Notes: a model not told the origin generated them from the sequence alone. A DNA stretch of 64,000 bases from Histomonas meleagridis 2922-C6/04-290x (GCA_020184695.1 JAANOX010000218.1:186001-250000), one strand, 5' to 3'. Counted from the first letter of the stretch, positions 1,056-40,643 are shown. Numbers and translations are program-made.

Positions 1056-2486
1056 TTATGCATAATATATCTCCGGATAGAATTCTTGCAATATTGCACT
1101 TGCTACATCGGCAATTTCTTTATTTTCATTATCAGCATTATATTTTAGTACATCTGCAAACTCATCTTCGAACTGATCAAAGTTCTGAAACGAATCTGTA
1201 CCAAATCTTATCATTCTCTGTAATGCATTCCTTAATGTTATAAGAACAGTCTTTAAACGCTTTCCCTCAAGACATTCAACTGCGTCCAAACATGCAGAAA
1301 TTAAATCAGTCTGGAAAATTTGTTGTAATACTTCGATTGATGAACAATAACATATCGAAGATATACATTCAACAATCAGTGCTTTAGATTCAAAACATGC
1401 TGCGTCAATTCCATCACGTAACTTCTTAATGATTTTAGGATCAGTTATCCATTTTTCATGTTGTTTTGCAACAACAAAATCTTTTATGATAGAAATTGAA
1501 CATTGAAATTCTTTCGAATCATGTGGAAAGCCAAGAAGAAAAGCTTTGACTGTGTTAATATCAATTTTCGTTATGATAGAGCTATCGGATGAAATACAGC
1601 AATCAGCAATTTGAACAAAAAGTTGAAGAATTTGTAAATGTAATGGGAAATCGGGTCGTAAAAGTAGATTATATTGGTTAAAAAGGTGACTTATAACAAG
1701 TTGATTAAGACCTTTTTCTTTGGTATAACGAAGAAGACCCTCAGAAAATTCAATTGACAATTGACAAGGAAACGGTTTGTCAACACGTTTCATGGCATCA
1801 AAGAAAAGGCCAAGAATCAGAAGTGGTACGTTGTCGGGAAACATTGAAATAAAGCGGCACATGTTGCAGAATGTGCAACAAATACAGAATAAAATTTGTT
1901 GCTGAAAAACATCATCCGAATTCTGCACTGATGCCTCAAAACATTCAATAAGAAAAGTAAGAGTGTTCGTGCGAAGAAACTCTTTGGTTCCAAGAGATGT
2001 TTGTGGAATATAACGTAATATTTCAAATCCAAGAAGCTTGATCTGTTCATTTTGGAAAAGCGGGAGCTGATTAATGAAGTGATATCCACCAAACGAGAGA
2101 AATATATCAATGGATTCAACTGACTTCGAAATAATAACATGAATTAATTTAATGGAAATAAGTTGAAGTTTAAGATCATCATGTTGTGGAGCAATTACAA
2201 GAAGAAATCTGCATATATCTGATTGTTCTAAAAATTCTTTTGTTATTGAATGATGAAGACAAAGCGCTTTATATATTTGTTCAAGGTCATTGATAAGATC
2301 TTCTCTTGATCCCTTGCTTTGACATTCTTTTGCAGAAAGGACCCATTCACAAATAATAAATAGTGATGGAGGAGGAACATAATCAACAGGAGGATCTTCA
2401 CATTGACCAGAAGTAGATTGTGTTAACTCACTCCTAATTTTGTTTCCATGAGCTTTTGATTGTTTGGCTTTATACCCAATGTTCAT
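1056..2486 (-). CDS. Hypothetical alpha-helical (ARM/HEAT-like) protein
   Basis: Long ORF. The track start at 2531 is TTG; the first ATG is 2486 (MNIGYKAKQ). Leu/Ile-rich helical pattern; fold is inferred. Confidence 0.7.
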   Translation of the reverse strand: MNIGYKAKQSKAHGNKIRSELTQSTSGQCEDPPVDYVPPPSLFIICEWVLSAKECQSKGSREDLINDLEQIYKALCLHHSITKEFLEQSDICRFLLVIAPQHDDLKLQLISIKLIHVIISKSVESIDIFLSFGGYHFINQLPLFQNEQIKLLGFEILRYIPQTSLGTKEFLRTNTLTFLIECFEASVQNSDDVFQQQILFCICCTFCNMCRFISMFPDNVPLLILGLFFDAMKRVDKPFPCQLSIEFSEGLLRYTKEKGLNQLVISHLFNQYNLLLRPDFPLHLQILQLFVQIADCCISSDSSIITKIDINTVKAFLLGFPHDSKEFQCSISIIKDFVVAKQHEKWITDPKIIKKLRDGIDAACFESKALIVECISSICYCSSIEVLQQIFQTDLISACLDAVECLEGKRLKTVLITLRNALQRMIRFGTDSFQNFDQFEDEFADVLKYNADNENKEIADVASAILQEFYPEIYYA

Positions 2487-2628
2487 ATTTGAAAGAACGT
2501 TAAACAAAGCCTCAAAACGGTTCTCAATCAATGAGGCCCATTACCATAAAACCGTTGTACAGAATATAAAAAGTTGGTATCGTCCTTAAGAAAAAGCATC
2601 GAAAAATATCAGTAAAATTTTTTAATAA

Positions 2629-4731
2629 ATGAGCACCTCTTCAGATTCAGAAAGCATCGAAAATAGCTCTTCGACTGACTCTGAGTCATCCGAGTCAAAG
2701 GAAGAGCCAAAGCCTACAACTAAAAATAAGAAAAATAATGTATCTCAATCTAAGAAAACACCTAAGAAAGCGGTAAAAGCAAAGGGTGGGAAAGCGCCAA
2801 AAAAGTCTCCTAAGCCAAAGCAACCTCAAAATCAAGAAATAACAAAGAAAGATGATAAACCTAAAAAAGATAAAACAGAACAAAAAGAAGCTAAAAAGCC
2901 AAAAGACCAGCCAAAGAAGGAAGAAAAGAAGCCTAAAGAAGAGCCAAAGAAAGAAAAAGAAGAAAAGAAGCCAAAGGAAGATAAAAAGAAAGATGACAAA
3001 AAGTCAAAAGAAGAACCAAAGAAAAAGGATAAGAAACCAAAAGAAGAACCTCTGAAAGAAAAAGAGGAAAAATCAAAGAAAGAAGATAAGATGCCAAAAG
3101 AAGATAAAAAGAAAGAAAAAGAAGAAAAGCCTAAAAAGGAAGTAAAGAAACCAAAGGAAGAGCCTAAGAAAGAAAAAGAAGAAAAACCAAAGAAAGAAGA
3201 TAAGAAGCCAAAGGAAGAGCCTAAGAAAGAAAAAGAGGAAAAACCTAAAAAGGAAGTAAAGAAACCAAAAGAGGAGCCCAATAAGGAAGACAAGAAGCAA
3301 AAAGATGACAAGAAGCCGAAAGAAGAAGTAAAGAAACCTAAGGAAGATAAAAAGAAAGAAGAGCCTAAGAAGGAAGACAAGAAGCCCAAAGAGGACAAAA
3401 AGCAAAAAGAAGAACCTAAGAAAGAAAAAGAAGTAAAGAAGCCAAAGGAAGAGCCCAAGAAGGAAGATAAGAAGCCCAAAGACGAAAAGAAGCCAAAAGA
3501 AGAAGTAAAGAAAGAGAAAGATGAAAAGAAACCAAAGGAAGAACATAAGAAGGAAAAAGAAGACAAAAAGAAGGATAAAGATGAAAAGAAACCAAAAGAA
3601 GAAGTAAAGAAAGAAAAAGAAGACAAAAAGAAGGATAAAGATGAAAAGAAACAGAAAGAAGAAGTAAAGAAAGAAGACAAAAAGAAGGATAAAGATGAAA
3701 AGAAACCAAAAGAAGAAGTAAAGAAAGAAGACAAAAAGAAGGATAAAGATGAAAAGAAACAGAAAGAAGAACCTATGAAAGAAAAAGAAGATAAAAAGAA
3801 AGACGAAAAGAAGCAAAAAGAAGAAGTAAAGAAAGAAGAGAAGAAGGAGAAAGAGGACAAAAAGAAGGAAGACAAGAAGCAAAAGGACGAAAAACTCGCC
3901 AAAATCAAAGAGATGAAAGAGAAGAAGGAGCAAGAGAAGAAGGAAAAGAAGGAGAAGAAAGAGCAAGAAAAGAAGGAGAAGAAAGAGAAGAAGCAGAAGC
4001 AAAAAGAAGTGAAGAAGCAAAAGAAGCAAAAGTCGTCAGATGACGACGACAATTCGCACAAGAAGATCGACAAGAAACTCGAGAAGAAGAACAAGAAGTT
4101 ATACAAACATAAAGTTGATATTGAAGAAGAACCACGTGAACAAACTGATGATGATGAGAACAGTGATCAAAAGATCATTCACGAAGCAGCTAATGCATTG
4201 TTCTTACATCATAAACGACGACGCGCATCGAGTGCCGACAAGATCTTCATTGGCGATCACATTGGAGTCACCGAAATCCCCGAAATCAATGAAGAGTACG
4301 GCCACGAAGGAATACTATTTGCTGCGCGTGCTAATCGATTATATGCGTATAGTCACATGACTGAAAGTGTGATTTTGGTTACAAATGTTAAAATTTATAT
4401 ATTAAATAGTCGAATGGAAATGTTCGAAAATATGCAGCCGATTAACATCGAAGACATCGAAAAGGTTTCATTGTCAAATGAAAGAGATAACGCAATTGTG
4501 GTCCACTTGCCGGATTATAAGTCGGAATTGTTGTTGACTCCGTTCAAGGCTGAATTGGTTTGCATATTGAACACAAGGTTTAAGGAATTGACGGGTAAAA
4601 AGCTGGAAATCAAATTCGGTGAATCAATAGAATTCCCAGTCAGCCAGGAAACAATGTTCGAAATTAAATTTACACCAACGGCTGAAGGTGTAAGAACAAC
4701 ATTGTTCTGTAAGGCTAATACACAAGAATAA
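2629..4731 (+). CDS. Lys/Glu-rich low-complexity protein with C-terminal myosin-I tail (TH1)-like domain, no motor domain
   Basis: About 450 aa of KKE/KPKEE repeats, then KRRRASSADKIFIGDHIG...VILVT..KIYIL...IEKVSLS..RDNAIVVH, resembling the class-I myosin TH1 signature (RRR.S..R.F.GDY). Confidence 0.75.
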   Translation: MSTSSDSESIENSSSTDSESSESKEEPKPTTKNKKNNVSQSKKTPKKAVKAKGGKAPKKSPKPKQPQNQEITKKDDKPKKDKTEQKEAKKPKDQPKKEEKKPKEEPKKEKEEKKPKEDKKKDDKKSKEEPKKKDKKPKEEPLKEKEEKSKKEDKMPKEDKKKEKEEKPKKEVKKPKEEPKKEKEEKPKKEDKKPKEEPKKEKEEKPKKEVKKPKEEPNKEDKKQKDDKKPKEEVKKPKEDKKKEEPKKEDKKPKEDKKQKEEPKKEKEVKKPKEEPKKEDKKPKDEKKPKEEVKKEKDEKKPKEEHKKEKEDKKKDKDEKKPKEEVKKEKEDKKKDKDEKKQKEEVKKEDKKKDKDEKKPKEEVKKEDKKKDKDEKKQKEEPMKEKEDKKKDEKKQKEEVKKEEKKEKEDKKKEDKKQKDEKLAKIKEMKEKKEQEKKEKKEKKEQEKKEKKEKKQKQKEVKKQKKQKSSDDDDNSHKKIDKKLEKKNKKLYKHKVDIEEEPREQTDDDENSDQKIIHEAANALFLHHKRRRASSADKIFIGDHIGVTEIPEINEEYGHEGILFAARANRLYAYSHMTESVILVTNVKIYILNSRMEMFENMQPINIEDIEKVSLSNERDNAIVVHLPDYKSELLLTPFKAELVCILNTRFKELTGKKLEIKFGESIEFPVSQETMFEIKFTPTAEGVRTTLFCKANTQE

Positions 4732-5214
4732 AATGAATCGAGAAAAAAATTTTATTTTTTTTTTTACGTTTTCGCATTTGATGTTGTTTTGTGATGTGAA
4801 ATGTTTATGCAATTGAATCAAAACGATTATTTTTGTTTCAAATTTCAAAATGAACATCTCACTAAGTCTAAATTGAAAAAACATTTTTTTTAATGAATGG
4901 AAAGAAGAATACATTCATTATTTTCAGATTTCGTTGCGCAAACATTATAATTAAAAAAATTTTCACATTTCAAGATAACAAAATCAATTGAAATTTGATT
5001 CAAAATATGACATGATAATCATTCAAAGACCGTGAAACAAAGAAGATTTTATTTTTGCTAAAATAAAATTAGAACCTGCTGCAACAGAGGTGATCACAGC
5101 GTGCGGCAGGTCATGTTGGACACGCCGCTCAATTTGTCTGAAAAAGTACTTTTCAGTCTGAAAGCAAAAAACGGTTTTATTCAATCCAACCTCCCAAGAA
5201 AACCATTTTTTTGG

Positions 5215-7239
5215 ATGCAATTAATTGTAGACAACCCATGGCTTGAAAAATATAGAGGCCACATCGAATGGCGTCATAGGAACTATGAGGAAGCCAAAGA
5301 ACGCATTAACAAAGTTGCTGGTTCAATGGACAAGTTTACTCAATCTTACAAAGAGTTTGGACTTCATCATAATGGCAATTGTATCACCTACAAAGAGTGG
5401 GCTCCTAATGCACGTGAGATCTATCTTGTTGGTGATTTCAATAATTGGAATACTAAAGATCCAAACACCAAATGTAAACGTGATGAGTTTGGCATGTTTA
5501 CTCTTACTCTTCCTGATGGTAAGGATGGACCTGTTATACCTCACAATTCTAAAGTTCGTGCACATTTAGTTCTTTCAAGTGGTGAAGAAGTTTCTCGTAT
5601 TCCAGCTTGGATCAACTTTACATACCAAAACCCACAGAACTTCAACTTTGATGGTGTTTTCTGGAATCCACCAAATCCATATCAATTCAAACATCCAACA
5701 CCAGAACCACCACGTGATTCTAGTCTCTTAATTTATGAAACTCATGTTGGTATGGCCGGTGTTGAACCACGTCTTCATACCTACAAAGAATTTACTCGCG
5801 ATGTTCTTCCTATGGTTAAGAAAGATGGTTACAATGCCATCCAAATCATGGCCATTATGGAGCATGCCTACTATGCCTCTTTTGGCTATCAAGTCACATC
5901 ATTCTTTGCAGCATCATCTCGATTTGGCACACCTGAAGATCTTAAAGAACTCATTGATACAGCACATGGAATGGGCTTGTCTGTCTTTTTAGATCTTATT
6001 CATTCCCATGCAGCCAAGAATGTTCTTGAAGGCATTAATCATTTTGATGGAACCGATCATCAATATTTCCATGAAGGCGGCCGAGGATATCATCCATTAT
6101 GGGACTCACGTTTGTTTAACTACAACCACATCGAAGTACAGCGCTTTTTATTGTCGAATTTGCGATATTATTTGGACGAATACAAATTCGACGGTTTTCG
6201 GTTTGATGGGGTTACCTCAATCATCTATAAGCACCATGGCAACATGTATAATTTCACGTCCTTAGATGACTACTTTAATGATTTAGTTGATGAAGAAGCA
6301 GTTACATACTTATATTTAGCTAACGATGTTATTCATAGTGTTCGACCAGATGCGATCTCGATTGCAGAAGAAGTCAGTGGAATGATTGGACTTGCGCGCT
6401 CACTCAAGGACGGCGGCTTCGGCTTTGATTACAGGTTAGGAATGGCCGTTCCAGACATGTGGATCAAGATCTTGAAAGAGCAAAAGGACGAAGATTGGAA
6501 TGTCGGCAACATCACATTCACTTTGTCCAATCGTCCGTACAAAGAGAAGACAGTTGCGTATTGCGAGTCGCATGACCAAGCGCTCGTCGGCGACAAGACA
6601 TTAGCGTTCTGGCTCATGGACAAAGAGATGTACACTCACATGTCGACATTATCGCCGCAATCACTAATCATTGACCGCGGCATCGCATTGCACAAGATGA
6701 TCCGCTTGATAACATTCGGCTTAGGCGGCGAGGCATACTTAACATTCATGGGGAACGAGTTCGGGCATCCGGAATGGATCGACTTCCCGCGCGAAGGCAA
6801 CGGCAACTCGTACCACCATTGCAGAAGGCGATTCGACTTGCCGAAGGACGACTTGCTTAAGTATAAGTACTTGCTGAACTTCGATAATGATATGTTACAA
6901 CTGGAACATAAATATAAGTTCATGAGCTCCGGTGATAATGGATATGTAACATTGAAACACGAAGGTGATAAAGTCGTCGCTTTCGAAAGAGGAAATTTGT
7001 TGTTCGTCTTCAACTTCCACCCAACGAAAAGCTTCGAGGGCTATTGGATAGGAGTCGAGTGGCACGCGAAGTTCGAGTACGTGCTGTGCACCGACGACGA
7101 GAGATACGGAGGCTTCAGGAGAGTAGACACAAGCACCGTGCCAGAGTCGTACCCGGAGCCGTACCAGAATAGAAAGTGTAAGATACAGCTGTACCTGCCG
7201 TCGAGATGCGCATTCGTATTGAAGAGAAAAGATAACTAA
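5215..7239 (+). CDS. GBE1: 1,4-alpha-glucan (glycogen) branching enzyme, GH13
   Basis: GH13 catalytic motifs GFRFDGVT, AEEVSG and YCESHDQ; eukaryotic GBE motifs WAPNA and FMGNEFGHPEWIDFPR. First ATG at 5215 (the track start is GTG). Confidence 0.95.
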   Translation: MQLIVDNPWLEKYRGHIEWRHRNYEEAKERINKVAGSMDKFTQSYKEFGLHHNGNCITYKEWAPNAREIYLVGDFNNWNTKDPNTKCKRDEFGMFTLTLPDGKDGPVIPHNSKVRAHLVLSSGEEVSRIPAWINFTYQNPQNFNFDGVFWNPPNPYQFKHPTPEPPRDSSLLIYETHVGMAGVEPRLHTYKEFTRDVLPMVKKDGYNAIQIMAIMEHAYYASFGYQVTSFFAASSRFGTPEDLKELIDTAHGMGLSVFLDLIHSHAAKNVLEGINHFDGTDHQYFHEGGRGYHPLWDSRLFNYNHIEVQRFLLSNLRYYLDEYKFDGFRFDGVTSIIYKHHGNMYNFTSLDDYFNDLVDEEAVTYLYLANDVIHSVRPDAISIAEEVSGMIGLARSLKDGGFGFDYRLGMAVPDMWIKILKEQKDEDWNVGNITFTLSNRPYKEKTVAYCESHDQALVGDKTLAFWLMDKEMYTHMSTLSPQSLIIDRGIALHKMIRLITFGLGGEAYLTFMGNEFGHPEWIDFPREGNGNSYHHCRRRFDLPKDDLLKYKYLLNFDNDMLQLEHKYKFMSSGDNGYVTLKHEGDKVVAFERGNLLFVFNFHPTKSFEGYWIGVEWHAKFEYVLCTDDERYGGFRRVDTSTVPESYPEPYQNRKCKIQLYLPSRCAFVLKRKDN

Positions 7240-24892: not shown

Positions 24893-25741
24893 ATGGATAA
24901 TAACTTGCCTGCTTTTGCTAGAGCACTTCAAAGGAGAAGGATGAATCAAACATATAATACTTCTCAAAGAAGGAAGCCAGTAGAAAATGATTCATTTTCA
25001 TCTGATAATTTAACCAATTCACCTCCAAGAAATTCAGCACAAACTATTGATCCTCAATACATAAAATATAAGCAAACAAAAGATGATGAGGTTCAAGCAC
25101 TTAAAGATAAAATTGCTGATCTTGAACAAGAAATTTCAATTTTATCAACAGAAAAACTTAAAATCCAAAAAGATCTTGATACTGAAAGACAAGTATCTGA
25201 AAGTCTTTCTAAACAAATTGATGAAATTAGGGAAGAACTTGAAAGTGAAAAGACCAAAAATGAAATATTAAAAGAGCAAGTTTCACAATTGGAATCATTT
25301 ATGGACAACAAACAACAGCTTTCGGATGCCAAGGAAACAGTAATACAAAGAATACAACTTGAATACCAAGAAGTTATGAAAGATTATCAAAACTTACTTG
25401 CAACAAATTCAACACAAGCAAGTCAACTTCGCCAAGCCAGGCAATACATAAACGAGCTTGAACAAGAAATTGAGTATTTAAACAAATCTAATAGAAGATC
25501 TCAATCCAATAACAATGTAAATCTTCCACAAGACGATTTCGATTATTGGTCTAAACCAGACAAAGAATTTAATACAAGCAAACAGGAACTCTCTTTTGAA
25601 ACGTCGCAGAAAAATAATGCATTTTATGAAACACCAAAAAAGAGAGATAATTTTGATACTAACTATCGAGATGAATTACAGCAAAGTCGGCGACCACGTG
25701 TTGTTAAATCAGCTCTTGTTGATAATATTGTTTTTGGTTAA
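24893..25741 (+). CDS. Hypothetical coiled-coil protein
   Basis: 282 aa; central heptad-rich E/K/Q/L segment. Confidence 0.75.
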   Translation: MDNNLPAFARALQRRRMNQTYNTSQRRKPVENDSFSSDNLTNSPPRNSAQTIDPQYIKYKQTKDDEVQALKDKIADLEQEISILSTEKLKIQKDLDTERQVSESLSKQIDEIREELESEKTKNEILKEQVSQLESFMDNKQQLSDAKETVIQRIQLEYQEVMKDYQNLLATNSTQASQLRQARQYINELEQEIEYLNKSNRRSQSNNNVNLPQDDFDYWSKPDKEFNTSKQELSFETSQKNNAFYETPKKRDNFDTNYRDELQQSRRPRVVKSALVDNIVFG

Positions 25742-25876
25742 CCAAAAATGTAAAATTTAATAAATGTGTTTCTATTTGTGTTTTCATTGTTAAATTTTTG
25801 GTTAAAAAATTATAATTAAAGCGAGTAATTTTTATTTCTTTTGATTTTATGATTTTTATTTTCATTAACTTTCATG

Positions 25877-26934
25877 CTATTGAAGTAGCTTAACAATTTC
25901 ATGATTACCTTTGGAAGAAGCAATCATAAGAGCTGTTTGGAAATTCATAAATAAATTCCAAATTAATAAAGAAAACATCAAACATATATTAACATTCCAC
26001 AAAATAAAAAAAATATTTTTTATATTTGAATCAACTCCATAATTAAATAATAATTGAACAATATTAATTTTATTATTTTGAGAAGCAAACATTAAAGCTG
26101 TCCAAAAATTATCAAATATATTCCAAATATATCAATTATACCAAAAATTATTTAAATAAATATTACGAAAATTATTAAAACATTTTGTAAGTTAACATCA
26201 ATTTTTTCATTTTCAAGAAGACATTCAACAATATCAGTTAATCCTTTTTTTGAAGAAATCATAAGTGGTGTTCTAACAATTTTATTAAAATATCAAATAA
26301 TGAATTCAAACTTTAATAAATTTTAGGAAATTTTAAGATAAAATAATATATATTTTTGATGTTTACGTTAACATTAGGATTTTTAAGAAACAATTTTACA
26401 ACATTTGAACATGATATTGTAAGTGGTGTTTCAAGTTAAATGAAGAAATTCCAAACATTATAATGAAAATTGATGTAAATGAAAAAAATTTTAAAACAAT
26501 CAATGAAACATTTTTTACGTTTACATCGATATCTTCCTTTTTAAGGAGTATTTCATATATCTTAATTAGTGTATATGAGCAAGCTATTGTAAGAGCTGTT
26601 TCAAATTTCTTAATTAAATTCCAAATGATTTTTGAATACATCAAATTATTTAAAATAATTTTGAAATTAGAAATTAAATATTTGAAGTATTGACATCAAT
26701 GTTATTTTGGTCAAGAAGTAATTTAACAATGTCAAAATGAAATAGTTTACATCCTTTTATTAAAGCTGTTTCAAATTTTTAATGTAAATCCTATAATATA
26801 TTATCGAAATTTTATAATGAATAATAAAACTTTAAAATTAACAAATAAATATATTTAACATTTATGTCAATATCTTTATGTTCAAGAAGTAATTGAACTA
26901 TTTCTATGTAACTGATCCATTTTTCCTTTCTATA
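25877..26934 (-). other. Interrupted ankyrin-repeat locus: seven coding cassettes separated by six 75-78 nt spacers (5' end degenerate, no clear ATG)
   Basis: Cassettes: 26851-26934, 26680-26772 (31 aa), 26510-26602 (31), 26352-26432 (27), 26182-26274 (31), 26015-26104 (30), 25877-25939. Each after the first starts x-T-[AP]-L, and cassettes 2-6 end x-x-N (...N-x-x-N); all are stop-free apart from the final TAG. Confidence 0.85.
25940..26850 (-). other. Six structured spacers with 17+3+17+3+17+3+17 architecture
   Basis: 26773-26850 (78 nt), 26603-26679 (77), 26433-26509 (77), 26275-26351 (77), 26105-26181 (77), 25940-26014 (75); RTWT recurs at spacer positions 1/21/41/61 in most units. Confidence 0.8.
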
Positions 26935-27051
26935 TTATATTCTTTCAAGAAGTGCCTCTTTGAATTTATTATAATTTGAAAAGTTGATATACGCTAAAAA
27001 AAAAAAAAATAAGATTTTTCCACTCTAATTTTTTATTATAAATACTTACAA

Positions 27052-29451
27052 TTAATCATTTATTTTGACCTTTCCTCTTGAAATCAAAGATCTTAAATTT
27101 CTTTTTGCGTTTTCATTTCCTTTAGCTGCAGCCATTTTGAAGCATTTCACAGCAGTTTCTTCATCTTTTGGCACAGCAGTCCCCTTTAAGAACATCATTC
27201 CAATATTTACCATTGCTTTTGTATTTCCTAATGCAGCAGCATCTCCCAAAAACTTTGCTGCCTTTACGTAATTTCTTTTAACTCCATTTTTACCTTTTAA
27301 TAACATCATTCCCAACATTACCATTGCATCCAATTCGCCATTACTTGCTGCCAATTTCAAGTATTTTATTGCCTCATTAACATCTTTAGCTATCCCTTGA
27401 CCTTTTAACAACATTATCCCGATGTTTAATTGCGCATTAGGTAAACCACAATCAGCGGCGACTTTAAAATAATGTGAACTTTTTCCAATATTCTTTTTCA
27501 TTCCATTCCCTTCTAATAAAGATATTCCCATACTAAACATAGCCTTAACGAGTCCTTTATCAGCAGCTCTTTTTAAATAACGATTAGCCTCATTAATATT
27601 ACGTAAGGAATTTCTTCCTTTAGATAATAATATAGCTAAGTTATATTGAGCTTGTGGGTCATCTTGTAACGCAGCCATTTTATAATAATGGATTGCAGTA
27701 ACTTCGTTCTTTCGTACACCTCTTCCGAAATGAAACATTAAGCCTAAGTTTAATTGTGCTTTAGGATTACCTTTATTAGCGGAATAATCAAATAGCTTAA
27801 TTGCTTCGCGATCATTTTTAGGGATATATTTCCCTTCCGCTAACATTAAGCCTAAATTTAAAGCGGCCTTTTCATGGCCTTTATTTTTCGCATATAAAAA
27901 ATATTCGATAGATTTATATTTATTTTTAGCGATTTCAATTCCTTCGAACAACATTATACCATAATTATATTCACTATCAACTATACCTTGATCAGCAGAT
28001 AATTTAAAATAATTCGATACATTAATGTTTTCTTTCTTCATTAATAACCCATAAATATATTGCGAATAACCATTCCCTTTTAATGCGGATGTTTTAATCC
28101 TTTGGATAATCGAATTATTATTGTTTTTAACTATACGTTGTGAAATTCGATCACAAAATGATTCATATTCTAAACGATCAGTTCCAGGGAATATAAATAA
28201 TTTTCGATTTTTAACTAATTCATTAAGTTTAGGCCTTTGTTTAGGGTCAAATGAAATACAAGAATTTATTAATTCCTTTAAATGTTTTGGCGTGTTAATT
28301 GGTAAAATTGGTTTAATTCCATGCATAATATTAAATATTAATTCAGGCGCTGTAATTCCTTCATAAGGAAAATGTGATGTATACAAATGATATATTATCA
28401 TCCCAAATGAATAAACATCAGTTGAATAATCATATGATTTATGGAATAATATTTCAGGAGATTTAAAGACTAAATCATTCACATTTAAATCATTTTCATC
28501 ATCATGACGTATTAATCCAATGTCGCCAATTTTAGGCTCGAAATTTTCATCAAGTAATATGCTCGATGTACGTAAATCATTATGCATTAAGCCATTAGTA
28601 TGTAAAAGTTGTAAACCATATGCAATACCATATATTATGATGGATTTCTTGGTGGAATTCCACCCTAATGGTGACGTAGTGCTTTGGATTAATGAGATTA
28701 ATGATCCGTTTGGTATGTAATCCATTATTATTGCACTTTGCTCGCGTCTTAAAAAGTTTCGATTGATAAACCCAACAATATGAAGTATAGAAGGATGATT
28801 AAATGTGACTAATGCATCACTTTCATGGTCTTGGCCATTATTTAATGATTTTAACTTATCATTTAAAAGTGTCTTTTTGGCAAAAATCTCACCTGTCTTG
28901 ATGGATTTGACAAGCTCAAAGGTAGAGGATCGGCCAGAACTAATGTTTTGTAATGAAATAAAATCACTTGATGAAAAGATTTTCATTGTCGCACGTCGAC
29001 GATTGTTACGATCAAATGTTAGATCCCATGAACATTCGATTGTGGCAATGGATTTCTTACGTAGAATGGTTGAAAATGAGGCTACTTGAAGCATAACATT
29101 TTTTTTGAATATTAATGGAATAAGACTAAATTTGAAAACAGTGACTTTCTTAAGGGTAGGCGTGTTGGAAAATTTCATAAATAGTGTAATGACAAGAGGT
29201 TCTTCAAATAAAATTTCTAAATCATTTCGCATATATTCATCTGGAATAAAATGTGCTCTGAAGTTAAATTGCATGTTGTCAGTAGAGTTGACAAAAGGTG
29301 TAGTATATTCTTCAGTTTCATGTGGAAAATGTATCTTGGCACAAAATGTTTGTGGCTCTTGAAATAAGAAGCCTGTTATGTTGCGTAGCGTAATTCTAAG
29401 AGATCTGCATTCGTTGATTCTTCGTGATGAAAAATTTTCTCCATGGTACAT
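27052..29451 (-). CDS. Protein kinase (TKL-like, degenerate) with Sel1-like repeats and possible N-terminal C2-like domain
   Basis: FAKK, HPSILHIVG, HNDLRTSSILLD, KIGDIG, DVYSFG; about 9 repeats of the A..NLG.M...G.G...D...A..Y.K.AA..G pattern. Confidence 0.85.
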   Translation of the reverse strand: MYHGENFSSRRINECRSLRITLRNITGFLFQEPQTFCAKIHFPHETEEYTTPFVNSTDNMQFNFRAHFIPDEYMRNDLEILFEEPLVITLFMKFSNTPTLKKVTVFKFSLIPLIFKKNVMLQVASFSTILRKKSIATIECSWDLTFDRNNRRRATMKIFSSSDFISLQNISSGRSSTFELVKSIKTGEIFAKKTLLNDKLKSLNNGQDHESDALVTFNHPSILHIVGFINRNFLRREQSAIIMDYIPNGSLISLIQSTTSPLGWNSTKKSIIIYGIAYGLQLLHTNGLMHNDLRTSSILLDENFEPKIGDIGLIRHDDENDLNVNDLVFKSPEILFHKSYDYSTDVYSFGMIIYHLYTSHFPYEGITAPELIFNIMHGIKPILPINTPKHLKELINSCISFDPKQRPKLNELVKNRKLFIFPGTDRLEYESFCDRISQRIVKNNNNSIIQRIKTSALKGNGYSQYIYGLLMKKENINVSNYFKLSADQGIVDSEYNYGIMLFEGIEIAKNKYKSIEYFLYAKNKGHEKAALNLGLMLAEGKYIPKNDREAIKLFDYSANKGNPKAQLNLGLMFHFGRGVRKNEVTAIHYYKMAALQDDPQAQYNLAILLSKGRNSLRNINEANRYLKRAADKGLVKAMFSMGISLLEGNGMKKNIGKSSHYFKVAADCGLPNAQLNIGIMLLKGQGIAKDVNEAIKYLKLAASNGELDAMVMLGMMLLKGKNGVKRNYVKAAKFLGDAAALGNTKAMVNIGMMFLKGTAVPKDEETAVKCFKMAAAKGNENAKRNLRSLISRGKVKIND

Positions 29452-29558
29452 TTATCTATCGTGCCAAACTGGGGCACCTTGTTTCAAATTCAAAAAGAAA
29501 AAAAAAAAGAATATAAGTTAAATCATGATAAAAAAAATTAAGTGGACTCCAATAATTA

Positions 29559-29800
29559 TTATTCAAATAACTCCTTAGTTTTTTCAAAACCAATTGTAAT
29601 ACACAGTCAAGTGCCGTATAACATATTCAAAGCAATTTCCAAATATAATCTTTAAACATTCTATTATTGAAAAATATATTAAACATAAGATATAAATATC
29701 AATTCCTTTTTGATCAAGAAGTAATTTGGCAATTTCTATTCAGATGCATGAATAAGTGCTGTATAAAATAATTTCCAAATAAAGTTATAAATGAAATTCC
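29559..29800 (-). pseudogene. Second interrupted ankyrin locus (frameshifted) with one complete 77-nt spacer at 29621-29697
   Basis: YTALIHASE..EIAKLLLDQKGID | spacer | YTALDC...; frameshifts in both cassettes. Confidence 0.7.
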
Positions 29801-29949
29801 TGTCTTCTTTAATGTGTCCTCGCTTCAAAGTAAAATGAAATGACATTATTTTGCACTTTCAAAAATTGAATGAATTACTTAAATTGTAAAATATCAAAAA
29901 AGTGTTGAATCGTTCAAAAAGTTGTTTTAGGACAAGAATTTTTGTTTAC

Positions 29950-31251
29950 TTACCGCCACTTTTGTCCATGGAACTCGTTTTCGTGCGGGTTCATAATAAC
30001 TCCGTGTTCTGAATATCTTCCCGCTTGCTTTGCATACTCTGCTTGTTTCATAGCCTCGTCCTGATAAGTTCCGATGTAGGCACGTGGCTTATTGTATGAA
30101 CTTGGGGGATTTGGTACTGTGCGTCCACCGAGGTTTTCTGTCTTGTTGTTGTTATTTGTTGTACCGCGGTTGTACATGTTCTTGAGATTATTTACACCAC
30201 CCGCAGTTGATCTGCATTCCTGTTGCGGTGAAGGCTTGGATTGATATGAAGGAGTTGGCTTCGATTGATATGAAGGAGCTGGTTTGGATTGATATGATGG
30301 TGCTGGCTTCGATTGGTAAGAAGGTGCTGGTTTGGATTGGTAAGATGGCGCTGGCTTGGATTGATATGATGGAGCTGGCTTAGATTGATATGAAGGAGCT
30401 GGTTTGGATTGTTGATAGCTTGGAGTTGATGATGGTGGGGTATATTGTTGTGGCTTTAATCCTCCTCCTGATGGCTTTGATTGATATGAAGGAGCTGGTT
30501 TGGATTGTTGGTAGCTTGGGGTTGATGATGGTGGGGTATATTGTTGTGGTTTGAGACCGCCGGAACGTGGGGCATTTGATGGTGGTGGAGCTTTAACGCT
30601 GGAATAAGCACCGCCTGTTGGTCCATAGAAAGAAGAATCTTCTTTGAATTTTTGTCCATGATATTCATGCTCTTGTGGGTTCATTAAAACACCATGGCTG
30701 GTGTATCGACCTGCATCTTTGGCCTTTTGTGCTTGCATGTTTGCTTCATCAAGTTTTGTTGGCATGCATGCAGTTCTATCGATTTGTTCCTTTGTGAAAT
30801 GTGATCTATTAGCTTCACTTTGGTGTGCTGCATCTGGAAGGATTGGACCACGATAGCCTGGCTTGTATTGAACATTACGTGCAAGAGCAACCATATTGGT
30901 TAAGAACAAGCCCATATTGCGATTATCATAAACATCTTCGAAAACGCATGTTTCGTTATCTTTGCATCCAAGTTTAACACAAGCGTTTTGGAAAGCACCA
31001 AAGTTTTCTCTTCTGAACATAACAATTGGTGATTGATGAATACGAGGAATCATTCCTGGAGATAGCCTATTGATTAATTCGCAAAGAATAGTACCATCCA
31101 TTAAAGCTTCTCTAAGATTTCCTGGTATTTTTCTTCCGATGATTCCTTCCATCCAGGCACGTACTCTTCCTTCAAGAGCTACATCATAGCTTGCAGCACG
31201 TTTTTGAGCAAGGTCGGCATAAATGCCCATTTCCTTTGGCCTTGTCGACAT
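29950..31251 (-). CDS. Calponin-homology (transgelin/calponin-like) protein with PAPSYQSK repeats
   Basis: CH motif LMDGTILCELIN...ENFGAFQNAC...FEDVYDNRNM; 24-nt tandem repeats encoding PAPSYQSK. First ATG at 31251. Confidence 0.85.
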   Translation of the reverse strand: MSTRPKEMGIYADLAQKRAASYDVALEGRVRAWMEGIIGRKIPGNLREALMDGTILCELINRLSPGMIPRIHQSPIVMFRRENFGAFQNACVKLGCKDNETCVFEDVYDNRNMGLFLTNMVALARNVQYKPGYRGPILPDAAHQSEANRSHFTKEQIDRTACMPTKLDEANMQAQKAKDAGRYTSHGVLMNPQEHEYHGQKFKEDSSFYGPTGGAYSSVKAPPPSNAPRSGGLKPQQYTPPSSTPSYQQSKPAPSYQSKPSGGGLKPQQYTPPSSTPSYQQSKPAPSYQSKPAPSYQSKPAPSYQSKPAPSYQSKPAPSYQSKPAPSYQSKPTPSYQSKPSPQQECRSTAGGVNNLKNMYNRGTTNNNNKTENLGGRTVPNPPSSYNKPRAYIGTYQDEAMKQAEYAKQAGRYSEHGVIMNPHENEFHGQKWR

Positions 31252-36542: not shown

Positions 36543-39500
36543 CTAATTTCTATCTCTAGAATATCCTCTTCTATCTCCATAATACGGATGCGAATCTTTT
36601 TGTATATGATCACTTCTTTTACCTCTGTAATCATTTCTTGGATTGTAATTATCTCTCTGGGGATAATCATTTCGTTTGTAACTATCCCTTTGAGGATAAT
36701 CATCTCTTTGTTTGTAATTATCTCTCTGAGGATAATTATCATTTCGTTGATCAAAACTATCTCTCGGAGGATAATCATCTCTTTGTTTGTAATTATCTCT
36801 CTGAGGATAATCATTTCGTTGTTTGTAACTATCCCTTTGAGGATAATTATCATTTCGTTGATCAAAACTATCTCTCTGAGGATAACTATCATTTCGTTGT
36901 TTGTAACTATCTCTCGGAGGATAACTATCAATTCTTCGGTATTCATCAATTCTTTGATTGTGGTTATCTCGCGGAGGATAATCGTCTCTTTGACTATAAC
37001 TATCATTTCTCTGATTATAACTATCATTTCTTTTACTGTAACTATCATTTCTTTGACTAAAATTATCATTTCTTTGACTATAACTATCATTTCTTTGATT
37101 AAAACTATCATTTCTTTGGTTATAACTATCATTTCTTTGTATACTATCATTTCTTTGTATACTATCATTTCTTTGATTATAACTATCATTTCTTTGGTTA
37201 TAACTATCATTTCTTTGATTAAAACTATCATTTCTTTGGTTATAACTATCATTTCTTTGATTAAAACTATCACTTCTTTGTATGCTATCATTTCTTTGGT
37301 TGTAATCATCTCGTTGATAGTCATCGCTTCTATGATAATTATCGCCTCTTTGATTGTATCCTACGTCATGAGTATTTCGTGGCTTAAATTCATTACGTTG
37401 CATTTGATTATCTCTGTAATCATTTCGATAATTTCGATTTTCGTTTTCATTTTTATCTTCAATATGAGGATTATTTCCATAATAATTATAATTATTTATG
37501 CGGTATGCATGTTGTGGAGTTTCATTATCATTTCGTTTTACATTATACATTTGAGTTCCATTTCCTTCTTGACGAAATCGATTAAAAAATTGTTGTGGAA
37601 TTTCATGATTGTTATTATTATATTCATTTCGATTAGTATTTTGTTGTATATTTTCATCCGGAGTTTTGTTTTGCAGATTTCCAAAATGTTTTGACGTTTC
37701 CCTATTAATTGGAGTTGATGGAGGACGTCGACGAATAATTCGTGGCACAATAAGATCTTCAAAATCTTCATCTTCAACATCTTCATTTTGATTTGATGTG
37801 TTTTCTTCATTTGAAACAGTTGTTTTTGTTTCATTTTCTTCATGTTTATCATTATCATCTTCTGCATATATATCAATTTCTTCATCATCATCTTCTTTAA
37901 TTGCTTCTGTTTTTATTTCTTTTTTGACTGTAACATTTGGTTTTATTTCTTCTTCTTTTATAGTTATTTCTTCATTTATATGAGTTATTTGCTTCCTTCC
38001 TCTTTTATTTGGTACATTTTCTTCTTCTGTTTTAATAGGTTCTTCCTTCACAACATTATTTTGTGGTATTTCTTCTGTTTTCTCGCTTTCTTCTTTAATA
38101 ACATTCTGTGGTTTCCGTCCTCTTCTCTTTGGTGTCTCTTCTTTTACAACGTTCTTTGGTGGAATATCTTCTGATTTATCTGTTTCCTCTTTAATGGCAT
38201 TCTTTGGCTTCCTTCCTCTTCTCTTTGGTACTATTTCTTCTTCTGTTTTAATAGGTTCTTCTTTTACAACATTTTTTAGTGGTATTTCTTCAGTTTTCTC
38301 GCTTTCTTCTTTAATAACATTCTGCGGTTTCCTTCCTCTTCTCTTTGGTGTTTCTTCTTCAGTTTTCTCGCTTTCTTCTTTAATAACATTCTGTGGTTTT
38401 CTTCCTCTTCTCTTTGGTGTTTCTTCTTTTACAACGTTCTTTGTTGGAATATCTTCTGATTTATCTGTTTCCTCTTTGATAGCATTCTTTGGTTTTCTTC
38501 CTCTTCTCTTTGGTGTCTCTTCTTCTGTTTTATCGGATTTCTCGCTTTCTTCTTTAATAACATTCTGCGGTTTTCTTCCTCTTCTCTTTGGTGTCTCTTC
38601 TTCAGTTTTATCGGATTTCTCGCTTTCTTCTTTAATAACATTCTGCGGTTTTCTTCCTCTTCTCTTTGGTGTTTCTTCTTTCACAAAGTTCTTTGGTAGA
38701 ATATCTTCTGATTTATCTGTTTCCTCTTTCGGCGCATTCCTTGGTTTCCGTCCTCTTCTCTTTGGTGTCTCTTCTTCTGTTTTCTCGCTTTCTTCTTTAA
38801 TAACACTCTGCGGTTTTCTTCCTCTTCTCTTTGGTGTCTCTTCTTTCACAACGTTCTTTGGTGGAATATCTTCTGATTTATCTGTTTCTTCTTTCGGCGC
38901 ATTCCTTGGCTTCCTTCCTTTCCTCTTTGGCGCTTCTTCTTCTGTTTTGTCTGTTTTCTCACTCTCCTCTTTAGCATTCCTTGGCTTTCTTCCTCTCTTC
39001 TTTGGTGTTTCTTCTTCAGTTTTCTCACTTTCCTCTTTAGCATTCCTTGGTTTTCTTCCTCTTTTCTTTGGCGTTTCTTCTTCAGTTTTCTCACTTTCCT
39101 CTTTAGCACTTTTTGGCTTTCTTCCTCTCTTCTTTGGCGTTTCTTCTGTTTTATCTGTTTCTTCTTTAGCAGAATTCTTTGTCTTTCTTTCTCTTCTTTT
39201 GTTTTTAGTTTCTTCAGCTTTATCAGTTTCTTCTTTAGGTGTATACTTTGACTTTTTACCTTTTTGCTTTTCTTCAACATTTTTACTCTTCTTTTGCACT
39301 ACTTTGTTCTTACTTTCTTTTGTTACTTCTGATTTTTCTTCAACCTTCACTTCTATTTCTTTAACTTCATATTGTTCTTCTTCCCTCTCTTCAGTTTCTT
39401 CGACTATTTCTTCTATTGGTTCACTCATTAATTTTTCATAAAGATTTGATTTCGAATTTTCATCTAAATTAAAATGAGTGATAATATTTTCTCCTTTAAG

Positions 39501-40643
39501 TTCACCAACCGTTTCTATTCTCAATTTTTCAAAGAATTTTCTTCTATCGGTTGCCACTTTCTTTGTAGATGATACAATTTCAGTTGGATCACCGATTTGA
39601 TTAATTTCATCGTTTTCGTATATCTCATATAATAAATCCGTTTCTGGTGGTGGAATATCAGGTACATGTTCATTCCAAAGGTCTTCAAAAGTTTCATCAA
39701 AATTTATCAATGAATCAAGTAATGAAATTGGTGGAGGTGGACAATTTGGTGGTTCTTCAGAGTTTTGTATTTCAAGAGGAATGAAACGCCATTTCTGTAA
39801 TGATGCATTCGAAATTGTTGCTTGATATTTTTCCCTTTTGAAATATTTGTCACATTTTTCATCAACCTCTCGAAAAGTGTTTTGGATAAAATTCCGTTGA
39901 TAATGGGGAAGTAGAAATTCAAACCATTTGTGCTTAGAACTGGGTGATTCAATGGGTATCTCTTTAAGATCAAAAGCTTTGTTAACAACAGCAAGTGCAA
40001 TAACTTCGGATGGAACAATGTAAAATACTTCAAATTTCATAATGAATTTAAGAAGATCAGCCGCAAGACGGGTAATCTCTTTGTCAAAGCTTTGGATAGT
40101 TGCGTTTCCAACTATGCCGATAATATGCCAATGTAAAAAAGTATAAATAAATCGTTGAACATGGTCATGAGGAAGTGGCGCCGAAAAATTAAAATCTATC
40201 TCATAGAGAATATCCATTTCGGTTTGGTTAAGAGCTTTTGAGTAATATTGATTGAATTTTTGTATGTCAAAATTATACGTAAAATCAATGTGAAGAAGAC
40301 GCATAAAAGGATATTCATTTATCGACTGGGGATCTTGACGTATTTTGTTAATGATTTTATGGAAACTATCTGTCGAATCTTGGAGAAAGAAATTATAAGA
40401 AAATCGTTGATTAAAAACTTTTGAAGCAATATGATACGCTGCTGTTGCTGAAAAAAATATTATTTCATCAGATGATGCCTCTGGATGATATGATTTTTGG
40501 AAGTAATATAAAGTTGATACCATTATGTTTGGATTAAAATATGTATTTTTAATAAAAAATTTTATCAATCCGAGCGCATAATGAATAACATCATTTGGGA
40601 GATAAGGTAGAGTCGAAAATGATTGTGCTTTTTGTGCTTGCAT
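36543..40643 (-). CDS. Cyclin-box protein with 14 AT-hook-like repeats and an R/D/N/Q/Y heptad tail
   Basis: N-terminal cyclin-fold pattern (SATAAYHIASKV ... QTEMDILYEIDFNFSAPLPH); 14 GRK[PQ] motifs; RNDS[YF]NQ repeats. Confidence 0.75.
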   Translation of the reverse strand: MQAQKAQSFSTLPYLPNDVIHYALGLIKFFIKNTYFNPNIMVSTLYYFQKSYHPEASSDEIIFFSATAAYHIASKVFNQRFSYNFFLQDSTDSFHKIINKIRQDPQSINEYPFMRLLHIDFTYNFDIQKFNQYYSKALNQTEMDILYEIDFNFSAPLPHDHVQRFIYTFLHWHIIGIVGNATIQSFDKEITRLAADLLKFIMKFEVFYIVPSEVIALAVVNKAFDLKEIPIESPSSKHKWFEFLLPHYQRNFIQNTFREVDEKCDKYFKREKYQATISNASLQKWRFIPLEIQNSEEPPNCPPPPISLLDSLINFDETFEDLWNEHVPDIPPPETDLLYEIYENDEINQIGDPTEIVSSTKKVATDRRKFFEKLRIETVGELKGENIITHFNLDENSKSNLYEKLMSEPIEEIVEETEEREEEQYEVKEIEVKVEEKSEVTKESKNKVVQKKSKNVEEKQKGKKSKYTPKEETDKAEETKNKRRERKTKNSAKEETDKTEETPKKRGRKPKSAKEESEKTEEETPKKRGRKPRNAKEESEKTEEETPKKRGRKPRNAKEESEKTDKTEEEAPKRKGRKPRNAPKEETDKSEDIPPKNVVKEETPKRRGRKPQSVIKEESEKTEEETPKRRGRKPRNAPKEETDKSEDILPKNFVKEETPKRRGRKPQNVIKEESEKSDKTEEETPKRRGRKPQNVIKEESEKSDKTEEETPKRRGRKPKNAIKEETDKSEDIPTKNVVKEETPKRRGRKPQNVIKEESEKTEEETPKRRGRKPQNVIKEESEKTEEIPLKNVVKEEPIKTEEEIVPKRRGRKPKNAIKEETDKSEDIPPKNVVKEETPKRRGRKPQNVIKEESEKTEEIPQNNVVKEEPIKTEEENVPNKRGRKQITHINEEITIKEEEIKPNVTVKKEIKTEAIKEDDDEEIDIYAEDDNDKHEENETKTTVSNEENTSNQNEDVEDEDFEDLIVPRIIRRRPPSTPINRETSKHFGNLQNKTPDENIQQNTNRNEYNNNNHEIPQQFFNRFRQEGNGTQMYNVKRNDNETPQHAYRINNYNYYGNNPHIEDKNENENRNYRNDYRDNQMQRNEFKPRNTHDVGYNQRGDNYHRSDDYQRDDYNQRNDSIQRSDSFNQRNDSYNQRNDSFNQRNDSYNQRNDSYNQRNDSIQRNDSIQRNDSYNQRNDSFNQRNDSYSQRNDNFSQRNDSYSKRNDSYNQRNDSYSQRDDYPPRDNHNQRIDEYRRIDSYPPRDSYKQRNDSYPQRDSFDQRNDNYPQRDSYKQRNDYPQRDNYKQRDDYPPRDSFDQRNDNYPQRDNYKQRDDYPQRDSYKRNDYPQRDNYNPRNDYRGKRSDHIQKDSHPYYGDRRGYSRDRN

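Follow-up and report, generated by a model that had tools for sequence, protein, structure and literature searches.

Candidate 17-nucleotide introns around single-codon exons in an ankyrin-repeat gene copy of Histomonas meleagridis

An ankyrin-repeat gene copy of Histomonas meleagridis is interrupted by spacers of about 77 nt, and assembled RNA sequences indicate that most of such a spacer can be removed in four short pieces, with three single codons left behind. The gene copy lies in a 64-kb window (the whole stretch of DNA that was analyzed). In two of its six spacers (S1 to S6), the RNA form could be followed to the letter: the 17-nt elements are missing, and the codons between them complete an ankyrin hairpin that the DNA does not encode continuously. 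Genomic DNA retains the elements, and excision very probably takes place at the RNA level. Our working interpretation, for which we judge the balance to be about even, is that each 77-nt spacer consists of four 17-nt micro-introns around three one-codon exons and that these are removed by a strongly relaxed spliceosome.

Should the RNA evidence prove sound, splicing would exceed several of its presumed limits at the same time, with 17-nt introns that are neither GT-AG nor AT-AC, stand four in a row, flank single-codon exons, and recur systematically in a gene family. Either the spliceosome would need far less sequence information than assumed, with length replacing the 3′ signal, or a further eukaryotic RNA excision system would exist. 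In either case, the annotation of H. meleagridis, and perhaps of its relatives, would miss or break such genes.

Ankyrin cassettes and spacers of fixed length

Seven cassettes and six spacers make up the gene copy. Its parts, from 5′ to 3′ on the coding strand and followed by a second, isolated spacer, are listed here with the evidence for each.

25877..26922, minus strand: ankyrin-repeat gene copy (translation and Pfam Ank matches on the cassettes; RNA contigs of runs X3 to X5)
26851..26922, minus strand: first half-repeat, 24 codons, helix 2 and loop (translation; weak Ank match at profile positions 14-31)
26773..26850, minus strand: spacer S1, 78 nt, read as 17-3-17-3-18-3-17 with codons AAA, AAA, and AGG and one off-length element (parse of the sequence)
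26680..26772, minus strand: cassette C1, 31 codons (Pfam Ank; pairwise comparison with the other cassettes)
26603..26679, minus strand: spacer S2, 77 nt (parse; RNA contig X5 record 26; at least four deletions needed)
26663-26679, 26643-26659, 26623-26639, and 26603-26619, minus strand: 17-nt elements of S2 (parse)
26660-26662, 26640-26642, and 26620-26622, minus strand: one-codon exons AAA, GAT, and GGA of S2 (parse and RNA contig)
26510..26602, minus strand: cassette C2, 31 codons (Pfam; 0 mismatches in RNA contig X5 record 26)
26433..26509, minus strand: spacer S3, 77 nt, predicted codons AAA CAA GGA (parse; length as the evidence of removal)
26352..26432, minus strand: cassette C3, short, 27 codons (translation; alone it gives no Pfam match)
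26275..26351, minus strand: spacer S4, 77 nt, codons AAA AAA GAT (parse; mismatch pattern in X5 record 26)
26182..26274, minus strand: cassette C4, 31 codons (Pfam; RNA contig)
26105..26181, minus strand: spacer S5, 77 nt (parse; RNA contig X5 record 26; at least four deletions needed)
26165-26181, 26145-26161, 26125-26141, and 26105-26121, minus strand: 17-nt elements of S5 (parse)
26162-26164, 26142-26144, and 26122-26124, minus strand: one-codon exons AAT, TTG, and GGA of S5 (parse and RNA contig)
26015..26104, minus strand: cassette C5, 30 codons (Pfam; RNA contig)
25940..26014, minus strand: spacer S6, 75 nt, read as 16-3-16-3-17-3-17 with codons GGA, GAT, and GGA, stop-free and in frame (parse; retained in RNA)
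25877..25939, minus strand: last cassette piece, 20 codons and the TAG stop (translation; Pfam)
25877-25879, minus strand: TAG stop of the ankyrin copy (translation)
29621..29697, minus strand: second, isolated spacer, 77 nt, read as 17-3-17-3-17-3-17 with codons AAT AAT GGA (parse), in a decayed ankyrin fragment at ∼29560-29790

Cassettes C1 to C5 measure 93, 93, 81, 93, and 90 nt. Pfam Ank (PF00023, clan Ank, a 33-residue repeat profile) places them among the ankyrin repeats, with E values of 9e-6 to 0.01 for single cassettes and 1.4e-11, above the cut-off, for a 75-amino-acid piece. The matches begin at profile position 3 or 4 and end at 31 or 32, and about three profile positions (33, 1, and 2, the x-D-G hairpin tip) are absent between neighboring cassettes. 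An earlier, sequence-only reading of this DNA had claimed just such a loss of three hairpin residues, and the profile coverage, which stops at 3 to 32 of 33, agrees with it. Three micro-exon codons per spacer would fill positions 33, 1, and 2.

The same reading had given the spacer lengths as 78, 77, 77, 77, 77, and 75 nt and had split S2 to S5 into 17-3-17-3-17-3-17; on the minus strand the lengths are as claimed, and the split is exact in all four. Triplets at spacer positions 18-20, 38-40, and 58-60 encode KDG in S2, KQG in S3, KKD in S4, NLG in S5, and NNG in the isolated spacer at 29621-29697, which is flanked by frame-broken cassette pieces. These triplets had been expected to fit the hairpin better than shifted ones, and they reached 15 on a crude hairpin score of our own, on which all 16 shifted registers stayed at 4 or below. 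The five 77-mers (S2 to S5 and 29621-29697) align in register without an indel at 52 to 62% identity, where composition alone would give 40%; the coding cassettes are 55 to 62% identical, and the spacers have diverged about equally. Because the alignment is free of indels at such identities, length is conserved while sequence drifts, and the plain reading is that the exact spacer length is under selection.

Within the 64-kb window, the elements are limited to one gene family, and the other long open reading frames are uninterrupted. A search of the other genes in the window for 17-nt interruptions gave no convincing case, and the candidate pairs of reading frames examined with Pfam were separate genes.

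At the 5′ end, the cassette frame upstream of the first half-repeat contains an in-frame TAA and, as had been noted from the sequence, no ATG; the ATG at 26918-26920 lies out of the cassette frame. Because it has no usable start, the copy is probably a decaying member of the family, still transcribed and processed. The earlier suspicion that it might be silent is therefore half right, in that the degenerate 5′ end and imperfect S1 are real and the silence is not. We also considered a 17-nt element upstream of the first half-repeat and ruled it out, both parts being in the same frame with 18 nt, including the TAA, between them.

The surrounding window is gene-dense at ∼30% GC, with long open reading frames in the standard code, and contains no tRNA or Rfam match in its 64 kb. 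Its genes are eukaryotic and include a Sel1-repeat protein kinase, an LRR-PP2C phosphatase, and WD40 and CH-domain proteins. The best named relatives of the Sel1-repeat kinase are from Tritrichomonas foetus (55%) and T. musculus. In a comparison of synteny, orthologues of this kinase in a metagenomic relative (64%) and in T. foetus (55%) had no adjoining ankyrin gene.

Spacers in RNA and DNA contigs

We compared three RNA runs (X3, X4, and X5) and one DNA run (X1) with positions 25000-30900. The sequence occurs in two DNA samples, both of one study from 2021, and in RNA dating from 2023. The run type RNA is a guess; the runs were taken as RNA because depth differs ∼100-fold between neighboring genes and because a poly(A)-like T-run is present at 29925, a loose end that fits the tail of the minus-strand CH-domain gene. 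The RNA evidence consists of assembled contigs, from which rare forms are dropped.

One contig (X5 record 26; 468 nt) contains, in order, 25990-26104, 9 letters, 26182-26282, 91 unplaced letters, 26510-26602, 8 letters, and 51 nt ending at 26729, and these pieces sum to 468 nt. Its exon matches have 0 mismatches over 115 nt and 93 nt. At S5, the nine letters TCCCAAATT between 26104 and 26182 correspond to AATTTGGGA on the minus strand (AAT TTG GGA). At S2, 26602 and 26679 are separated on the plus strand by the eight letters TCCATCTT, which together with the matching T at 26679 correspond to AAAGATGGA on the minus strand (AAA GAT GGA). Both joined junctions, AAA-GAT-GGA and AAT-TTG-GGA, had been predicted from the genomic sequence, and both were recovered letter for letter. 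The contig enters S4 for 8 nt with 3 mismatches, as expected from AAAAAGAT against the genomic AAATTGTT (AAA-AAA-GAT), and its 91 unplaced letters equal 1 + 81 + 9, so a 9-nt replacement of S3 fits by length only. A second contig (X4 record 18; 518 nt) runs gap-free over 25795-26104 and continues with 192 letters, or 9 + 93 + 9 + 81. For S2 and S5, run X5 gives proof to the letter, and run X4 agrees by arithmetic only.

By enumeration, the RNA forms of S2 and S5 cannot be derived from the DNA by one, two, or three deletions; at least four are needed, and a 17/17/17/17 solution exists for each. This precision bears on the concern that the joined forms are artifacts of template switching, of a misassembled RNA contig, or of paralogue chimeras. 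Such a concern is reasonable for assembled contigs of AT-rich, repetitive sequence from a large family, but an artifact would have to make four precise deletions per spacer, restore the in-frame ankyrin hairpin each time, keep the long exon matches free of mismatches, and produce a pattern common to two runs. Moreover, six elements lack the border microhomology that template switching needs. We consider an artifact highly improbable.

The DNA data differ in kind. A contig of run X1 (record 2) spans 25795-26905 unspliced at a depth of 460, and its flanks have depths of 466 to 473. Among 31-mers sampled from 26105-26679, the share present was 1.00 in the DNA runs and 0.47, 0.34 (X5), 0.19, and 0.06 in RNA runs; exon-internal words alone would give 0.32, close to the value for X5. 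Programmed DNA elimination, which the sequence-only reading had listed among three possible mechanisms, would leave the elements absent from bulk somatic DNA, and it is not supported, because the spacers are at full depth there.

The RNA might still derive from DNA that already lacked the 17-mers, either a processed or rearranged copy or the product of somatic excision in a subpopulation, which would make the present locus an archive copy that is not expressed. Many paralogues are indeed present and cross-map, but their loose ends separate by source: those in DNA pass from N-A-K-N directly into an ATTT-type 17-mer, and those in RNA give intact hairpins, such as N-A-K-N-K-D-G-F-T. The DNA contig is unbroken over all six spacers, and an equal-copy processed paralogue with identical 81- to 93-nt exons would branch the k=31 graph. 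The joined junctions were also absent as DNA from the 64-kb window, with up to 3 mismatches allowed. Finally, the RNA contigs place the locus-specific S6 beside spliced S5, and because S6 is kept in the same contigs, we tie them to the 25877-26922 locus. Taken with the full complement of 31-mers in DNA, these observations make a preexcised template unlikely.

S6 is retained in RNA. Contigs X4 record 18 and X3 record 10 cross it gap-free, and in X5 record 26 its first 25 nt are continuous with the spliced S5. Its triplets would specify a perfect hairpin tip, G-D-G, and at 75 nt without a stop it leaves the frame intact, for which a random stretch of such composition has a ∼9% chance. The locus offers a natural experiment in which spacers of exact 17-mers are processed and a spacer with two 16-mers is kept whole. 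Two intact-looking 17-mers of S6 stay in the RNA together with its two 16-mers, which suggests that removal inside a spacer is cooperative or ordered, in this single natural case and in contigs that hide minor forms.

Retention of S6 is also the one observation that favors serial translational bypass, in which the 17-mers would remain in the mRNA and the ribosome would hop over them. S6 is simply in frame, however, and S2 to S5 are absent from the RNA contigs, so bypass is needless there and can be dismissed with near certainty as the explanation of the gene. Of the three mechanisms raised from the sequence, noncanonical RNA splicing is the one supported.

Element ends and candidate machinery

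The 17-nt elements share a simple pattern. Of 23 elements, 22 begin with a purine (15 with A and 7 with G), 22 have T at position 2, and 22 have T at position 4; position 3 is occupied by T or A. T is frequent at positions 15 to 17, A is absent from position 17, and 19 elements end with T. The borders thus read R-T-W-T... T-T, neither GT-AG nor AT-AC, much as had been described from the sequence (most elements starting RTWT and ending TT). GT starts 7 of the 23, and AG ends one; the further claim that none ends in AG is true of the 25877-26922 gene, the exception being at the second locus. Borders are unique in 6 of 16 elements (AT..TT in four, AT..AT, and TT..TT), and sliding ambiguity elsewhere is at most 1 base. 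Because these six borders are unambiguous, the elements are not GT-AG, GC-AG, or AT-AC. Elements that share a rank in different spacers resemble each other a little more closely (0.57) than do elements whose ranks differ (0.52). Recognition, as the sequence shows, relies on a short 5′ motif (purine-T-A/T-T), a T-rich 3′ end, and the exact 17-nt length.

Known intron classes describe these ends poorly. Like U2-type introns, the elements are removed from RNA and the exons are joined, as the RNA contigs and the 31-mer comparison indicate, but the 23 elements do not carry U2-type ends (5′ GT or GC with 3′ AG). U12-type (AT-AC) introns have a 5′ ATATCC consensus, a terminal AC, and a TCCTTAAC branch site. 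An initial A occurs in 15 of the 23 elements, but ATATCC and a final AC occur in 0 of 23 each. The extended parabasalid motifs (5′ GYAYGY/GTWYWD; 3′ (A/T)CTAAC...AG) are likewise missing, and only positions 1 to 4 (R-T-W-T) resemble the 5′ motif. A search for the parabasalid 3′ motif found a single ACTAACACACAG-like site in the window, outside the gene and at chance level, and no CTAAC...AG in the elements. A is commoner at position 10 (equivalent to −8) than at any other interior position. It stands there in 14 of 23 elements, a count that is reached by 5834 of 20000 interior shuffles (29%), and A at this position as a branch point is a hint that is not significant in 23 elements.

As the RNA and DNA contigs show, the gene is transcribed together with its spacers, four 17-nt pieces are cut exactly from the RNA of a processed spacer, and the ends are joined with the single codons left in place, so that each ankyrin repeat regains the x-D/N-G of its hairpin, three residues missing from the DNA. 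Under the relaxed-spliceosome interpretation, constant spacing from the branch A (at −8) would determine the 3′ cut, as in parabasalid spliceosomes, and 17 would be the sum of a 10-nt lariat loop and a 7-nt tail, explaining the fixed length. We speculate that the usual A-G could be replaced by a U-U 3′ end whose bases pair with the branch A and the +1 purine. Removal may be cooperative or ordered within a spacer.

A machinery derived from the spliceosome, to which we give roughly even weight, is favored because positions +1/+2 of the elements are purine-T and because their start resembles the G-T-W-Y of Trichomonas type B introns. It is also favored because parabasalids fix the spacing from branch A to the 3′ end, the branch motif lying at −12 to −8 (PMC6679479, PMC12316389), and because Stentor lariats branch at 10; the 15-nt Stentor introns, with branch A at position 10, form the smallest known lariats (PMC9505925). 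Against it stand the noncanonical ends, mostly A at the start and T at the close, with six unambiguous borders; the lack of GT-AG, of the parabasalid 3′ motif, and of CTAAC; and the nonsignificant count of A at position 10. In addition, 17 nt is below the shortest reported parabasalid intron (23 nt), and independent introns predict the loss of the two 17-mers of S6, which was not observed.

Several of these same points would fit a non-spliceosomal machinery acting on RNA, such as an endonuclease and ligase, or a complex that is RNA guided or uses a protein ruler. It would read the ∼77-nt spacer with its 20-nt period and remove the four 17-mers in one concerted step. The noncanonical ends, unambiguous in six elements, are in its favor, as are the strict length and period, the all-or-none behavior of S6 (17-mers stay when 16-mers cannot leave), and the confinement of the elements to one gene family in the window. 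The spacers nevertheless give no support for a bulge-helix-bulge or IRE1-type mechanism. RNAalifold predicted 0 conserved pairs in 5 spacers, a small, AT-rich sample in which weak structure could escape, and the spacers folded no better than shuffles (z-scores of −1.35 to +0.92); the conserved stem-loop at both cut sites that defines such mechanisms was not seen in the 5 spacers. The purine-T at +1/+2 is moreover what spliceosomal chemistry uses, and no candidate enzyme or guide has been identified. We entertain only tentatively the view that the 17-mers form a new intron class cut by a length-measuring RNA excision-ligation system (17 out, 3 in) with the whole spacer as its unit, although we judge such a system nearly as likely as a relaxed spliceosome. 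It would be categorically new, and through regulated skipping single codons might be left out, varying the ankyrin hairpins that contact ligands.

Comparison with known systems

In the full-text literature searched, we found no description of fixed 17-nt noncanonical introns combined with serial one-codon exons. The 2021 H. meleagridis genome paper (43 Mb, 28.7% GC, two strains) reports that introns are scarce, at most one per gene, and leaves ankyrin unmentioned. An 84-amino-acid stop-free piece of the spliced protein had no match in large protein collections, and a HMMER scan with the 75-amino-acid piece returned generic ankyrin proteins only, at no more than 61% identity. A degenerate spacer pattern gave 5 matches in JGI metagenome contigs, all of them to ordinary bacterial genes.

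Several systems outside conventional splicing share some features with the spacers. Euglenid nonconventional, tRNA-type (bulge-helix-bulge), and IRE1-type splicing are known to need RNA structure at the borders and to act on variable lengths. They resemble the present case in removing RNA without GT-AG, but the length here is fixed and no conserved structure was found in the spacers. Bypass elements, such as those of phage T4 gene 60 and the mitochondrial byps of yeasts, are also short noncoding inserts in coding sequence; they are known to remain in the mRNA, whereas the spacer inserts are absent from the RNA. Ciliate internal eliminated sequences, which are removed from somatic DNA, are likewise short AT-rich inserts in coding DNA with a length periodicity. 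Here, by contrast, the elements are present in DNA at full depth and missing from RNA alone.

Among spliceosomal precedents, 3-nt micro-exons of animals and plants (PMC7392893, PMC8632122, PMC8831610) are one-codon exons that are spliced in, but they are flanked by long canonical introns, occur singly, and are often alternative, neither serial nor family-wide. The introns of Stentor (15 to 16 nt, GU-AG; PMC9505925) and Mikrocytos (16 to 17 nt, with conserved sequence; PMC10245619) match the elements in extreme and narrow length range and in AU-richness, and the branch A at 10 in Stentor is a further likeness. Unlike the elements, these introns have canonical sequences and are scattered singly in ordinary genes, with no single-codon separation.

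A further comparison is with the type B introns of Trichomonas, which are 23 to 28 nt long, always begin with GT and end with AG, carry a (T/A)CTAAC branch motif, and number at most two per gene (PMC12316389). The Trichomonas intron pipeline drops junctions without canonical motifs (PMC12316389), and because of this filter it would miss such elements by design; if the junctions are real, other intron-finding pipelines built on canonical motifs would discard them in the same way. The 17-mers differ from type B introns in mostly starting with A, ending in T-T, lacking CTAAC, and standing four in a row with 3-nt exons. They are alike in belonging to the same phylum, in being very short, uniform in length, and T-rich, in the 5′ G-T-W-Y, and in a 3′ cut whose position would depend on constant spacing from a branch A at −8.

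Spacers and RNA of the main ankyrin gene

The RNA run X4 holds 0.47 of the sampled 31-mers from 26105-26679, the part of the main ankyrin gene running from spacer S5 to spacer S2, vs 0.32 expected for exon-only RNA. Based on this higher share, some partly unspliced, spacer-containing molecules of this region seem to be present in X4. The retained spacer S6 (25940-26014) would, if translated, place a 25-residue, very hydrophobic insert in the last ankyrin hairpin.

The 5' and 3' border regions of S2 (within 26591-26691) and S3 (within 26421-26521) are complementary over 6-7 nt (e.g., TTCAAAT with ATTTGAA), and pairing would span the whole spacer. No such complementarity was seen in S4 or S5, which makes chance the probable explanation of these matching borders in S2 and S3.

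The listed contigs of X1 (DNA), X3, and X4 (both RNA) that reach 25795-25799 break there, with 13-18 unmatched letters past the break. Such breaks point to a repeated k-mer or to a place where assembly and reads differ, e.g., in the length of a homopolymer, and they do not mark a clean poly(A) site.

Other genes of the window

5101-7239, glycogen branching enzyme gene, with bacterial nearest Atlas feature and structure clusters

These clusters are mostly Bacteroidota, and the gene could have a bacterial origin, although by the Atlas's own warning such cluster rows are not a sign of gene transfer. Extreme AT skew was found at 2001-4000 (+0.57), inside a long open reading frame (ORF; 2629-4731), and at 38001-40000 (-0.51), inside another (36543-40643) for which there was no Pfam match. 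Both ORFs look like low-complexity coding sequence.

A decayed ankyrin fragment and synteny

29560-29790, minus strand, decayed ankyrin fragment between the CH-domain gene and the Sel1-repeat protein kinase gene

This fragment contains a perfect 17-3-17-3-17-3-17 spacer (29621-29697; codons AAT, AAT, and GGA), flanked by cassette pieces that are truncated and frame-broken. Depth across the fragment exceeds 40,000 in RNA and DNA alike because contigs of many paralogues cross-map there.

The kinase has orthologues in Tritrichomonas foetus and in a metagenomic relative (loci compared: L001, 4000-5500, and L005), and neither orthologue has an ankyrin gene downstream. The ankyrin copy of the window is not syntenic.
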